Below, piece after piece: positions 1,075 through 20,263 of a stretch of 64,000 nucleotides of DNA; position 1 is the stretch's first letter, and every line of letters starts with the position of its first letter. The translations under genes were made by a program, and so were the position numbers. Where the stretch lies: the sequence record ON529855.1. One strand, written 5' to 3'. The notes beneath the pieces are model-generated. The model had not been told where the DNA came from, did not search any database, and worked only from the letters and a program-made list of their open reading frames with translations.

Positions 1075-1341
1075 TCAGTCTACTCCGTAGGCGCCGGGTT
1101 CGTGGATGTGCATCTCGCATCCATGCAGACCCACGATTCGCTGCGCCGCTTCAAGTGGCATGCCGGCGTTTTCCACACAATATCCCAGCAGACGCCCCAC
1201 CAGGTCCTGCAAATCGGTGATGTCGGCCGCCATCCGATCGAGCGTGTCGCTTCGGTCGTTCGGGTCTGGCGTCAGGGCGTCGTCCACCGCCATCACCTGG
1301 GGCGCACGGCCGGACCACTTGCGCGTGACGACGACCTTCAT
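1075..1341 (-). CDS. hypothetical protein (88 aa, MKVVVTRKW...)
   Basis: Start re-assigned to ATG 1341, overlapping the stop of the upstream ORF. Confidence 0.65.
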   Translation of the reverse strand: MKVVVTRKWSGRAPQVMAVDDALTPDPNDRSDTLDRMAADITDLQDLVGRLLGYCVENAGMPLEAAQRIVGLHGCEMHIHEPGAYGVD

Positions 1342-1634
1342 CGGGCGGCCCCCTCGGCGCGACGCAGCAGGGCGATGACCTCGTCCTGGGTGCGGGCCTC
1401 GTCGTTCAGCCAATCCGTCAGCGACCACACCTCCAGAATGTGCCCCAGAAACCAGACGGCTTCCTGGTAGAGGGCGGCGATGCTCTGTTCATCGGTCTGC
1501 ATGGGGTAGTGTCTCAGCGCCGCGCGATAGACGGCGGCGTGCAGGCTTAGCCCCGCGCCATCGGGGGCGAACCGGGGCGGCTTCCAGCCAGCCGCCGTGA
1601 GCATGTTGGCGGCCAGATCGTACAGGCTATGCAC
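1338..1634 (-). CDS. small phage protein, DUF6197-like
   Basis: C-terminal W-N-D...RT..EV..LL pattern typical of this phage family (recognised by eye). Confidence 0.55.
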
Positions 1635-2574
1635 AGGACGTTTCCTTCAAGCCCGTCAGCACCTCCGGCTCCAGGAACATGCCGCACGACGCCTTCACGT
1701 CCAGACCCACACGGGGCACGATGCGCGATTTCGGCGCGTCAAGGGCCGTCGCCAGCTTGGCGGTCAGGTAGGCCAGGTCGCGCTCGTCGGGCTCGACCCC
1801 CTGGGCGGGGCTGTAGGGATTGTAGCGCACGCAGTTGAAACGGGTCTTGAGTCCGCGATCCTTCGCCGCCTGGATGATCTCGTCGACGGTGTCTTCGTCG
1901 TCGTTCTGGCCCTTGATGAAGGACCAATGCAGGACGATTTCGCCGGGCTCGCGACCGTAATCCGGGGCTGTGCGTTGGAACTCCGCCAGCATGTCCAGGG
2001 CCGTATTCGGGTCCATCGCCTTGGGCAGCCAGCGCTTCCGGAACGCGGGGCGCATCGAATAGAGGCTATAGTAGATGTTGAGGCCAGGATGCGACGGCCC
2101 CAGCACATCTACCAGCGAGCGCCCCTCCAGATCGCGGGGCATGATGGTGCTGTAGTTCAACTGCGCGCGCGGCACGCCGGCGAACAACGCCTCCTCGCGC
2201 AGCGCCTTGAACAGCGCCGGATGCCCGCCGTTGAGGATGTCAGGGTTGGCGAAGGGCTCGCCCCGCGCCATGAAGTTGAAGTTGACGAACTGGGGCTCGT
2301 CGTCGACCGCTCGCTCGGCCTTGTAGCGCGTCAGCACCTGCCGCGCCTGGTCCAGGTAGTCCCCATGGCGCGCGGGCGTCATCATGGTCTGACCGGTCTG
2401 GGTCAGGTGACACATCCGGCAGGCCTTGTCACAGCCGGAATGGCTGGACAGGTAAACGATGAAGTAGGCGTCGACGCGGCGCACGAAGCGGCACTCGAAG
2501 GCGCCCCCGTCCTCGGTTTTGAGGACGTGGTTGACCGAGGCGTCCTGGGTCGAGACGAGAGTCTTGTAGGTCAC
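1627..2574 (-). CDS. RlmN/Cfr-like radical SAM RNA methyltransferase (atypical)
   Basis: CDKACRMC (CxxxCxxC), MARGEP (MGMGEP-like), C-terminal [11 protein letters not shown] (GxDIxAACGQL-like). Confidence 0.85.
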
Positions 2575-18410: not shown

Positions 18411-18956
18411 CTAGGCGGCGTATCGGTCGAGCATCCAGTGCAGGTCCATCGGCTCGAAGGCGTCGAACTCCTCGATCAGGTCGGCCGTCACGGGGAACAT
18501 GATCACTTCAGCCGAGGCGGGCGGGACGACGCTGCGGCGACTATCGGCCACGGCGCCCTTGCCGCGTCCGATGCTCTGGCGAGGCTTCACGCCGCGTTTC
18601 GGCTTGTAGGTCGCCTTGCGGCGCAGGGCGTTGCTCTGCTTGGACGTCTCGGCGGCGTCGGCCCGCTTCAACCCCAGGCGGTCGAGCCGGCCCAGGACGG
18701 CGCTGCGGCTGCGATTGCCCATGAGCAGGCTGATCTCCTGGGCGGTCTTGCCTTCGCGCCAGAGCCGTATCAGTTCGTCAACCTCGGTCTGCGGCCAGCC
18801 GTGGGTCGGCTTTTTCGGCTGAGCGGCCCTGCGGGCCTGGACCTTTGCGATCCGACGCAGTTCTGCCCGCTCCTGCGGATCGGCGGGGACCTCCATGTCG
18901 TCCCAGTCGCCAGAGCCGCGCCAGTCTCGGCTCGGATCGCCTTCCAGAAGCGTCAT
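18411..18956 (-). CDS. gcrA: GcrA-like cell-cycle regulator (N-terminal GcrA domain only)
   Basis: WPQTEVDELIRLWREGKTAQEISLLMGNRSRSAVLGRLDRLGL matches the GcrA N-terminal HTH pattern; no C-terminal CxWP..DP domain. Confidence 0.75.
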   Translation of the reverse strand: MTLLEGDPSRDWRGSGDWDDMEVPADPQERAELRRIAKVQARRAAQPKKPTHGWPQTEVDELIRLWREGKTAQEISLLMGNRSRSAVLGRLDRLGLKRADAAETSKQSNALRRKATYKPKRGVKPRQSIGRGKGAVADSRRSVVPPASAEVIMFPVTADLIEEFDAFEPMDLHWMLDRYAA

Positions 18957-20263
18957 CACCCCGCCAACCCGACTTCCGGCAGGCGCGGGCGCAGGTAGGG
19001 GACCAGAATGGCCGGCATGTCGACGCCGCCGTCGTCGGTCTGATGGTTCTCGAACAGCGCCGCCAGGGTGCGGCCGACCGCCAGGCCGGAGCCGTTCAGG
19101 CTGTGCAGGTAGCCCAGCTTGCCGTCCGCCTGGCGATAGCGGCCCTTCATCCGCCGGGTCTGGAAGTCGCCGCACCAGGAGATCGAAGCGATCTCGACAT
19201 AGCGTTGCTGGCTGGGCATCCAGACTTCCAGGTCGATGGTCTTGCGGGCGGCGAAGCCCATGTCGCCGGCCGCGAGCAGCACCTTGCGATAGGGCAGTTC
19301 GAGGTATTGCAGGACCGCCTCGGCGCAGGCGACCTTGCGATCGAACTCAGCCTCGGCCTGTTCGGGCTCGACCAGGGAGACCAATTCCACCTTCATGAAC
19401 TGATGTTGGCGGATCAGGCCGGTGGTGTCGCGGCCGGCGGCGCCGGCTTCGGCGCGGAAACAGGGCGTCAGGGCGGTGAACCGCAGCGGCAGGGCCTCGC
19501 GCTCGGTGGTCTGCTCGCGCGCCAGGTTGGTCAGCGGCACCTCGCCGGTGGGGATCAGCAGGTTGCCGTCCGTCAATTGGAAAAGGTCGTCCTTGAACTT
19601 CGGCCACTGCCCGGTGGCGTACATGACGTTGGGCTTGACGATGCACGGGACCGACTTTTCGACGTAGCCGTGCCGGTGCACATGCAGGTCGAGCATGAAC
19701 TGGCCCAGGGCGCGCTCAACGCTGGCGAAGGCCCCCGACAGGACGGCGTAGCGCGATCCGCTCAGCCAACCGGCGACGGCGCTGTCGTAGCTGTTCCCGG
19801 CCAGGGTGACATGGTCCTTGGGCTCGACATAGGCGCGGCGCTGGCCCCATTCGCTGATGACGATGTTGTTCGCTTCGCCGCCCTCGGGGATGTCCTCGGC
19901 AGGCAGGTTCGGCAGTAGGTCGACCAGGCCTTCGCGGGTCTTGTAAAGGGCGTCTTCCTGCTTCGCCAACCGCTCCAGGCGCGGTTTGATCTCGGCCATG
20001 CGGGCGCGCAGGGTCTCTTCCTCGGACGGGGGCGCATCGTCTTCCCGCGCCGCCACGGGCCGAACGTCCCGGCGGAGTTCACCGATCCGGGTCGAGATAG
20101 CGTTGCGCTCGGTCTGAAGCGCCTGGAGTTCGGTGCGGGTCGCCTGGAGGTCGCGATGCGCCGCGCGGGCGTCGTCGACGATGGTCTTCACAGCCCCGCC
20201 GCGTTTGGCGATCGCCGCGACGACAGCGTCGGGTTCATTGTCGATCAGGTGAAAATCAAGCAT
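18956..20263 (-). CDS. serS: seryl-tRNA synthetase
   Basis: N-terminal coiled arm; LIPTGEVPL; motif 2 FRAEAGAAGRDTTGLIRQHQFMKVEL; motif 3 LNGSGLAVGRTLAAL. Confidence 0.95.
   Translation of the reverse strand: MLDFHLIDNEPDAVVAAIAKRGGAVKTIVDDARAAHRDLQATRTELQALQTERNAISTRIGELRRDVRPVAAREDDAPPSEEETLRARMAEIKPRLERLAKQEDALYKTREGLVDLLPNLPAEDIPEGGEANNIVISEWGQRRAYVEPKDHVTLAGNSYDSAVAGWLSGSRYAVLSGAFASVERALGQFMLDLHVHRHGYVEKSVPCIVKPNVMYATGQWPKFKDDLFQLTDGNLLIPTGEVPLTNLAREQTTEREALPLRFTALTPCFRAEAGAAGRDTTGLIRQHQFMKVELVSLVEPEQAEAEFDRKVACAEAVLQYLELPYRKVLLAAGDMGFAARKTIDLEVWMPSQQRYVEIASISWCGDFQTRRMKGRYRQADGKLGYLHSLNGSGLAVGRTLAALFENHQTDDGGVDMPAILVPYLRPRLPEVGLAG

Follow-up and report, generated by a model that had tools for sequence, protein, structure and literature searches.

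A tyrosine at the resolving-cysteine position in a mostly viral sister clade of the radical S-adenosylmethionine enzymes RlmN and Cfr

Class A radical S-adenosylmethionine (SAM) methylases are defined by a mechanism that uses two cysteines. Escherichia coli RlmN (PDB 3RFA, 5HR7; TIGR00048) methylates C2 of A2503 in 23S rRNA and of A37 in tRNA, and Cfr (PDB 9P0P; TIGR04432) methylates C8 of A2503 in 23S rRNA. In RlmN, one SAM molecule methylates C355, while a second, cluster-bound SAM is the source of the 5'-deoxyadenosyl radical; methylation depends on C118, and the C118A mutant traps a covalent enzyme-tRNA complex (PMC5130265; entries 5hr6 and 5hr7). Likewise, the C105A and E91A mutants of Cfr lose resistance (PMC2836569, table). 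Here, we describe an RlmN/Cfr-like protein in which a tyrosine takes the place of the resolving cysteine, encoded by DOMOVOI_02490 of the Brevundimonas jumbo phage vB_BpoS-Domovoi (ON529855.1, 352.7 kb, Dolichocephalovirinae). The gene lies in a window, i.e., the whole stretch of DNA analyzed, of 64,000 nucleotides (bases 124001-188000 of the phage genome, to which the first 12 kb were matched at 100% identity). Its product of 315 amino acids, initiated at a GTG codon, is identical to that of a coding sequence annotated as "hypothetical protein" in the record.

Relationship of DOMOVOI_02490 to RlmN and Cfr

A family profile of 30 homologues was aligned by HMMER to the solved structures of Cfr (9p0p) and E. 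coli RlmN (3rf9/5hr6). The best match was to Cfr 9p0p (E value of 2.9e-14), followed by the RlmN entries 6fz6, 3rf9, 4pl1, and 5hr6 (E values of ~1e-7), with the motifs in register. In this alignment, Y41 falls on C105 of Cfr and on the cysteine of the RlmN motif L-C-V-S-S-Q-V-G-C (C118), while C297 falls on the cysteine of A-A-C-G-Q, corresponding to Cfr C338 and RlmN C355. When four RlmN-type sequences from bacterial genomes were included in a MAFFT alignment, Y41 and C297 fell in the same columns. The initial annotation, which had described the CxxxCxxC, MARGEP, and C-terminal ASCG motifs as intact, the ASCG cysteine as the equivalent of RlmN Cys355, and a tyrosine as the residue at the Cys118 position, was thus correct in each of these assignments. 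Its comparison with the resolving role of RlmN Cys118 was also sound.

The AlphaFold2 model of the protein (predicted local distance difference test score, pLDDT, of 87.7; predicted template modeling score of 0.87) is closest to RlmN 5hr7_A, with a Z score of 25.6, a root mean square deviation of 2.9 Å, and 276 aligned residues, residues 1 to 304 of the model being placed on RlmN residues 80 to 364. Matches to RlmN (Z scores of 24 to 26) ranked above those to Cfr (Z score of 18.1) and to unrelated radical SAM enzymes (Z scores of ≤16), and Foldseek gave a concurring result. As residue 1 of the model aligns at RlmN residue 80, the N-terminal domain is absent, in agreement with the earlier proposal that the helical RNA-binding extension is missing. 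An upstream extension of the open reading frame (ORF) is ruled out, because the ORF starts at the first start codon after a stop. A split N-terminal domain encoded by a neighboring gene was considered and rejected: Pfam and NCBIfam scans detected no RlmN_N domain among the neighboring ORFs of Domovoi, 201phi2-1, and CcrColossus. The ASCG block lies in a C-terminal loop modeled with low confidence (mean pLDDT of 54 for residues 291 to 300), and the loop that carries C297 is probably mobile.

In comparison with RlmN, the protein shares the core fold, the CxxxCxxC motif, the G-E-P SAM motif, the active-site glutamate, and the mobile C-terminal loop with the methyl-carrier cysteine (RlmN C355, Domovoi C297). 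It differs in that RlmN residues 1 to 79 have no counterpart and the essential C118 is replaced by tyrosine. Sequence identity is only ~15 to 20%, and the clade to which DOMOVOI_02490 belongs is acidic, whereas RlmN is basic, and has specific motifs of its own. With Cfr, the protein has in common the fold, the layout of the two-SAM active site, and the alignment of C338 with C297; in contrast, C105 of Cfr is replaced by tyrosine, the Cfr N-terminal domain is absent, and there is no sign of a role in antibiotic resistance.

The scores against established family models reflect this distance. DOMOVOI_02490 reached 37.8 bits with the RlmN model TIGR00048 (cutoff of 290 bits), 29.7 and 29.1 bits with the Cfr models TIGR04432 and NF000424 (cutoffs of 550 and 530 bits, respectively), and 14.7 bits with the Pfam Radical_SAM model PF04055 (threshold of 29.5 bits). 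Nevertheless, C48, C52, and C55 and the fold match to many radical SAM structures assign the protein to the radical SAM superfamily. The class A methyltransferase core fold and the C-terminal methyl-carrier cysteine are both present, while the second, resolving cysteine of class A enzymes is not, with a tyrosine at the aligned position and no other cysteine conserved clade-wide. A full-length match was obtained with PHROG 27142 (E value of 3e-101; residues 2 to 302 on profile positions 5 to 300 of 300), the family of DOMOVOI_02490, which also comprises 201phi2-1 gp434, CcrColossus gp283, and the Phabio and Psa21 homologues. This family bears only the generic name "Fe-S-cluster redox domain-containing" and is without a characterized member, and full-text literature searches returned no report of the cysteine-to-tyrosine replacement in it. 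Labels like "rRNA large subunit methyltransferase N" in databases are unjustified for genes of the tyrosine clade.

Conservation and distribution of the tyrosine clade

Conservation was assessed in two sets of sequences. A word-index search retrieved 2430 relatives, and the columns of close homologues were counted on the best 120 plus the query. An exhaustive profile search covered 1.84 billion cluster representatives (50% identity), and columns were counted on the best 150, which are 35 to 60% identical to the query. At 50% identity, the clade comprises 416 clusters at an E value of ≤1e-30 and 869 clusters at an E value of ≤1e-10. Position 41 is a tyrosine in 121/121 close homologues and in all 148 representatives that cover the site. 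The three cluster ligands C48, C52, and C55 are likewise invariant (121/121 and 148/148), C297 is present in 121/121 close homologues and 151/151 representatives, and E27 is invariant in both sets. The replacement of the cysteine, which had been noted as a peculiarity of one phage enzyme, therefore characterizes an entire family, PHROG 27142, which is large and mostly viral and has a domesticated bacterial branch.

Further residues that are invariant among the representatives are R29, S43, T58, G105 (151/151), S170, Y172, H216, N224, N252, G290, G298, and F300, while R104 is found in 145 of 151. H45 and H56 look invariant among close relatives but vary in the wider clade, being Q and W in 201phi2-1.

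It had also been suggested that alignment with RlmN, Cfr, and phage homologues might uncover another cysteine at the C118 site; the tyrosine is there, and no alternative cysteine is conserved. Among close homologues, only columns 48, 52, 55, and 297 contain at least 20% cysteine, and among the representatives a single additional column, position 40, reaches this level (37/151). The Domovoi protein has further cysteines at residues 28, 248, and 314. C28 and C314 were rejected as substitutes for C118, as both are confined to the closest relatives of the Domovoi protein in the column counts, and so was C248, whose column contains less than 20% cysteine in both close homologues and representatives. 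The cysteine at position 40 adjoins the tyrosine in about a quarter of the clade, is not conserved, and is a valine in Domovoi; by strand alternation, the side chain at this position should face away from the active site.

Selection on the gene is purifying, as judged from pairwise dN/dS values of 0.11 to 0.5 among the orthologues of Brevundimonas and Caulobacter phages. Because a tyrosine that is invariant clade-wide is maintained under purifying selection, a working catalytic solution is favored over a degenerate or accidental loss of the cysteine. Hundreds of clusters at 50% identity keep the methyl-carrier cysteine together with an invariant tyrosine at the resolving position, from which it follows that the reaction is completed differently, that its product differs, or both.

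In a maximum-likelihood tree of 88 rows, from which L050, L051, L058, L061, L067, L091, and L092 of our numbered loci were left out as duplicates, the tyrosine clade forms one group on a long stem, with a support of 98 in the Shimodaira-Hasegawa-like approximate likelihood ratio test (SH-aLRT). True RlmNs fall outside it, as do the proteins of Klebsiella phage 05F01 (Val at the site) and Tunturi_5 (Cys) and a short Achromobacter paralogue (Cys). Taken together, the alignments and the tree place DOMOVOI_02490 in a large, mostly viral sister clade of RlmN and Cfr that is defined by the tyrosine-for-cysteine replacement and by loss of the N-terminal domain.

Viruses account for approximately 75% of the clade members with a known taxon (Atlas), with T4-like, phiCbK-like, and phiKZ-like phages among them. 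Cultured carriers are eight Brevundimonas jumbo phages, the Caulobacter phages CcrColossus (gp283) and CcrPW, and the phiKZ-like Pseudomonas phages 201phi2-1 (gp434), Phabio, Psa21, D6, RVTF4, and Viktualia. The clade is found in phages that are experimentally tractable, including 201phi2-1, CcrColossus, Phabio, and the Brevundimonas phages. Uncultured carriers include a clade of T4-like phages, a 563-kb phage contig, and 35 IMG/VR contigs, many of them 160 to 465 kb in size. Among approximately 185,000 species genomes, 47 were matched, a count that is limited by the two search patterns used.

Within the tyrosine clade, viral rows are interleaved with scattered bacterial rows, and the genes of Myxococcota and Planctomycetota form a single subclade (support of 98) nested among viral rows, beside the 201phi2-1/Psa21 group. 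Canonical RlmN was detected above the cutoff in all five of the tested bacterial genomes that carry a tyrosine-clade gene; in these genomes, the true RlmN scores 315 to 439 bits on TIGR00048 and the tyrosine-clade member 41 to 68 bits. As all five carriers retain a true RlmN, the tyrosine-clade gene is an addition and not a replacement. Some bacterial occurrences are on large replicons or contigs. Tyrosine-clade genes were observed on Pseudomonas megaplasmids (~0.95 and 1.06 Mb) and on a 535-kb Paracoccus plasmid (L027, L046, and L013). A 244,062-bp contig in a metagenome-assembled genome of a gammaproteobacterium (L045) has the same size as an IMG/VR viral contig (L089) and encodes an identical radical SAM protein; it is probably a jumbo phage genome.

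Other core-only RlmN-like proteins, i.e., those of Achromobacter L099, Tunturi_5 (gp170), and Klebsiella phage 05F01, resemble the tyrosine clade in having short cores and a C-terminal CG(M/Q) cysteine. All three are outside the clade in the tree; those of L099 and Tunturi_5 keep a cysteine at the C118 position, and that of 05F01 has a valine. The core-only paralogues of L099 (Achromobacter anxifer) and of two places on the Polyangiales chromosome score 97 to 220 bits on TIGR00048 and start at model positions 70 to 77. As the L099 paralogue keeps the C118-type cysteine, loss of the N-terminal domain has also occurred outside the tyrosine clade. The distant RlmN-like gene of 05F01 (L100:2863-3792) adjoins a gene for anaerobic ribonucleotide reductase. 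Its product, with Val at the C118 position, a cysteine two residues later, and the C-terminal S-C-G-M-F motif kept, is a second, different departure from the two-cysteine pattern.

Possible reaction and substrate of the tyrosine clade

We tentatively favor the reading, to which we assign somewhat less than an even chance, that DOMOVOI_02490 is a functional enzyme of a mainly phage-borne class A sister clade that modifies an RNA base with the tyrosine assisting in resolution. The enzyme probably still carries out the first half of the reaction, since it has the cluster, the SAM motif, the glutamate, and the methyl-carrier cysteine. C297 would be methylated with one SAM, and a second SAM would convert the S-methyl group of C297 to a thiomethylene radical, which would attack a base of a nucleic acid at an sp2 carbon. 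An RNA adenine would be the likeliest target, tRNA being the prime candidate. Release of the covalent enzyme-substrate intermediate by formation of a Cys-Cys disulfide would be impossible, and, most economically, Y41 could help to resolve it by passing a proton or a hydrogen atom on to the sulfur or thiyl radical of C297, while an external source would supply the electrons. Because the tyrosine is invariant, whereas any residue would suffice to trap the adduct, it is likely to take part chemically. The enzyme would serve a phage-specific purpose, such as the modification of host or phage RNA during infection, and would not merely duplicate RlmN. A substrate or binding mode unlike that of RlmN is suggested, since bacterial carriers keep a canonical RlmN, the N-terminal domain is lost, and the clade is acidic (median isoelectric point of 6.1 and net charge of -4; isoelectric points of 8.3 to 8.7 for the RlmN cores extracted here).

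Hints at an RNA, and in particular a tRNA, substrate come from the homology itself, from neighboring genes, and from the bacterial members of the clade. According to the record annotation, a CCA-adding enzyme and a Thg1-like enzyme are encoded 2.1 kb and 6.2 kb downstream of DOMOVOI_02490, respectively, and in CcrColossus a CCA-adding enzyme is encoded 1.7 kb from the tyrosine-clade gene. In addition, 5 of 37 viral loci have flanking tRNA genes, which in one of them lie on both sides of the gene. None were found in the 64-kb Domovoi window.

In 23 of the 47 bacterial loci, the tyrosine-clade gene is located back to back with a gene for an AbiEii-family nucleotidyltransferase (Pfam PF08843, E values of 1e-21 to 1e-28; PADLOC AbiEii models, E values down to 1e-60). 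The next gene encodes a leucine-rich repeat (LRR) protein with a TIGR02996-like N-terminal region (21 loci), and a further gene encodes a protein of approximately 295 amino acids with a sulfotransferase-type P-loop (16 loci), for which a PDB profile search returned no match. In the four-gene arrangement, which occurs in Myxococcota and Planctomycetota (L008-L043, e.g., L009:4108-8861), the radical SAM gene is divergent from the other three; the gene order is rearranged in one bacterial locus, where the cassette genes are still together. As the cassette-linked radical SAM genes form one clade, the linkage is real for that branch. Characterized members of the AbiEii family (the MenT toxins) modify tRNA 3' ends, and the link of one bacterial branch to this toxin family suggests a role in phage-host conflict. 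No AbiEi-type antitoxin was found in the arrangement, nor did the LRR and P-loop proteins match any PADLOC model, and the four genes may represent an undescribed conflict system. Other bacterial loci are in variable islands, e.g., beside a type I-F-variant CRISPR-Cas locus. The Domovoi protein itself had no match among the PADLOC models for anti-phage defense, and a homologue, P0085, had only a weak, generic viperin match (E value of 4.7e-4).

Several observations weigh against Tyr-assisted modification of RNA. The acidity of the clade and the missing N-terminal domain fit poorly with the binding of a whole tRNA or rRNA, and an acidic protein with several invariant, clade-specific arginines (R29, R104, R179, and R288) could also accept a small anion, e.g., a nucleotide, as its substrate. 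The gp47/gp46 context in the T4-like clade is one of DNA metabolism, not RNA. The association with tRNA genes is modest and partly due to shared ancestry. Tyrosine cannot provide the two electrons that the cysteine pair of RlmN supplies, and a methyl product needs another reductant. Finally, full-text literature searches retrieved no paper on the tyrosine clade, the relevant matches being papers on the RlmN and Cfr mechanisms only.

The missing electrons also lead to a further conjecture, which we consider quite improbable, namely, a reaction that is not known from any class A enzyme. Without the electrons of a cysteine pair, the Cys-S-CH2-base intermediate is at the hydroxymethyl oxidation level. 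In a redox-neutral outcome, which is attractive on chemical grounds, elimination assisted by the tyrosine and attack of water or another nucleophile on the methylene would yield a hydroxymethyl-type or substituted methylene adduct on an RNA, DNA, or nucleotide base. In large phages, this would serve as a nucleic-acid modification of a new kind, which Myxococcota and Planctomycetota would have domesticated in the four-gene AbiEii cassette. If so, such a nonmethyl adduct could help large phages to escape host nucleases or tRNA-targeting toxins.

An alternative that we regard as unlikely, but well short of negligible, is that the same chemistry is directed at DNA or at a free (deoxy)nucleotide instead of RNA. 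The enzyme would then make either a modified base destined for phage DNA or an altered nucleotide, and in the bacterial cassette this product would be used together with the AbiEii nucleotidyltransferase, which is itself an NTP-using enzyme. The acidic character of the clade, its arginine-rich conserved core, and the lack of the RNA-binding N-terminal domain are in line with such a substrate. In the T4-like clade, the gene directly follows those for gp47/gp46-type recombination nucleases and overlaps the end of the gp46-like gene, being translationally coupled to these recombination genes. Similarly, the distant Tunturi_5 homologue is near SbcD-like and DnaB-like genes, the 05F01 homologue adjoins NrdD and phosphoribosyltransferase genes, and the neighborhood of DOMOVOI_02490 includes a deoxyribonucleotidase and a phosphoribosyltransferase-like gene. 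However, characterized class A enzymes all act on RNA adenines, no partner in nucleotide metabolism is conserved across phage lineages, and no nucleotide-metabolism domain occurs in the clade representatives with N-terminal extensions. A lead toward a deaminase fusion (an Atlas structural neighbor with a dCMP/cytidine-deaminase domain) was followed and left unconfirmed, with no Pfam domain found in the N-terminal extension of any representative. Should the substrate be RNA or DNA of the host or the phage, the clade would represent a new phage-encoded nucleic-acid modification.

Alternatively, the protein may not be a methylase at all. Spore photoproduct lyase uses a Cys/Tyr relay, and the Cys-Tyr pair of the clade could act as a similar hydrogen-atom or radical relay in a SAM-initiated rearrangement, repair, or lyase reaction on nucleic acid that proceeds without methyl-Cys. 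In line with such a relay, the radical SAM core of the clade combines an invariant tyrosine with an invariant noncluster cysteine, the lyase is among the generic fold matches (Z score of ~13), and the DNA recombination/repair neighborhood in T4-like phages fits. Yet the C-terminal S-C-G-M-F loop and the glutamate aligned with the "SAM2" site of Cfr belong specifically to the class A methyl-transfer apparatus, and the fold is much nearer to RlmN (Z score of 25) than to the lyase, which makes this explanation improbable.

Very unlikely, in our estimate, is a deliberate single-turnover cross-linker that stays covalently attached to a tRNA or rRNA of the host and with which phages would shut off translation, while in the AbiEii cassette it would be a toxin-like effector: although RlmN C118A traps a covalent tRNA adduct (5hr6/5hr7 entry titles; PMC5130265) and a toxin-family gene lies beside the bacterial branch, alanine or any other residue would trap, yet the tyrosine is invariant in ~270 diverse sequences, which indicates a chemical role, stoichiometric inactivation of abundant RNAs would be inefficient, and several bacterial carriers are without a visible antidote. 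Of the three possibilities raised in the initial annotation, another working route of resolution is argued for by the invariant tyrosine, and a different substrate or binding mode by the retention of RlmN, the missing N-terminal domain, and the acidity of the clade, while the formation of stable adducts is neither supported nor contradicted.

The DOMOVOI_02490 locus and further gene contexts

The positions of the gene and of its motifs in the window are listed in Table 1.

Table 1. Location of DOMOVOI_02490 and its sequence features in the Domovoi window
Feature	Position	Strand	Description	Evidence
DOMOVOI_02490	1627..2574	-	Core-only RlmN/Cfr-like radical SAM protein, PHROG 27142 member	ORF, annotation, profile, AlphaFold2 model
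CxxxCxxC (CDKACRMC; C48, C52, C55)	2410..2433	-	Radical SAM [4Fe-4S] cluster ligands	Translation; aligns with Cfr and RlmN cluster motif
VYLSSHSGC stretch with Y41	2431-2457	-		Direct translation
Y41	2452..2454	-	At resolving-cysteine position (RlmN C118/Cfr C105); clade hallmark in Y-L-S-S motif	Profile and MAFFT alignments
E27	2494..2496	-	Invariant; aligns with Cfr E91 ("SAM2" site residue) and RlmN VETV glutamate	Profile alignment
MARGEP	2254..2271	-	Counterpart of RlmN/Cfr M-G-M-G-E-P (SAM-binding GGE-type motif); R104 clade-specific	Translation, profile alignment
ASCG with C297	1681..1692 (C297 at 1684-1686)	-	Counterpart of methyl-carrying RlmN C355/Cfr C338	Profile and MAFFT alignments

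DOMOVOI_02490 is one of many small genes in a long codirectional series, and it overlaps both of its neighbors, by 4 nucleotides at its start (with the stop of the upstream ORF) and by 8 nucleotides at its stop (with the next ORF). The upstream ORF (2571-2900, 109 amino acids) had no family match, and the downstream ORF, DOMOVOI_02480 (1338-1634, minus strand, 98 amino acids), matches the Pfam family DUF6197 (E value of 9.6e-11). Clustering of the neighbors in 40 viral loci revealed synteny within lineages only and no phage partner gene conserved across lineages.

Two further observations concern individual members of the clade. In P0027, a homologue of 491 amino acids from a JGI metagenome, an HNH endonuclease domain (PF01844/PF14279) is inserted at approximately residues 118 to 153 of the radical SAM core, in what looks like a mobile-endonuclease or intein-type insertion. 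The 563-kb phage contig with a tyrosine-clade gene (L056) encodes a ribosomal protein L7/L12-like protein (18660-19115) and three tRNA genes within 10 kb.

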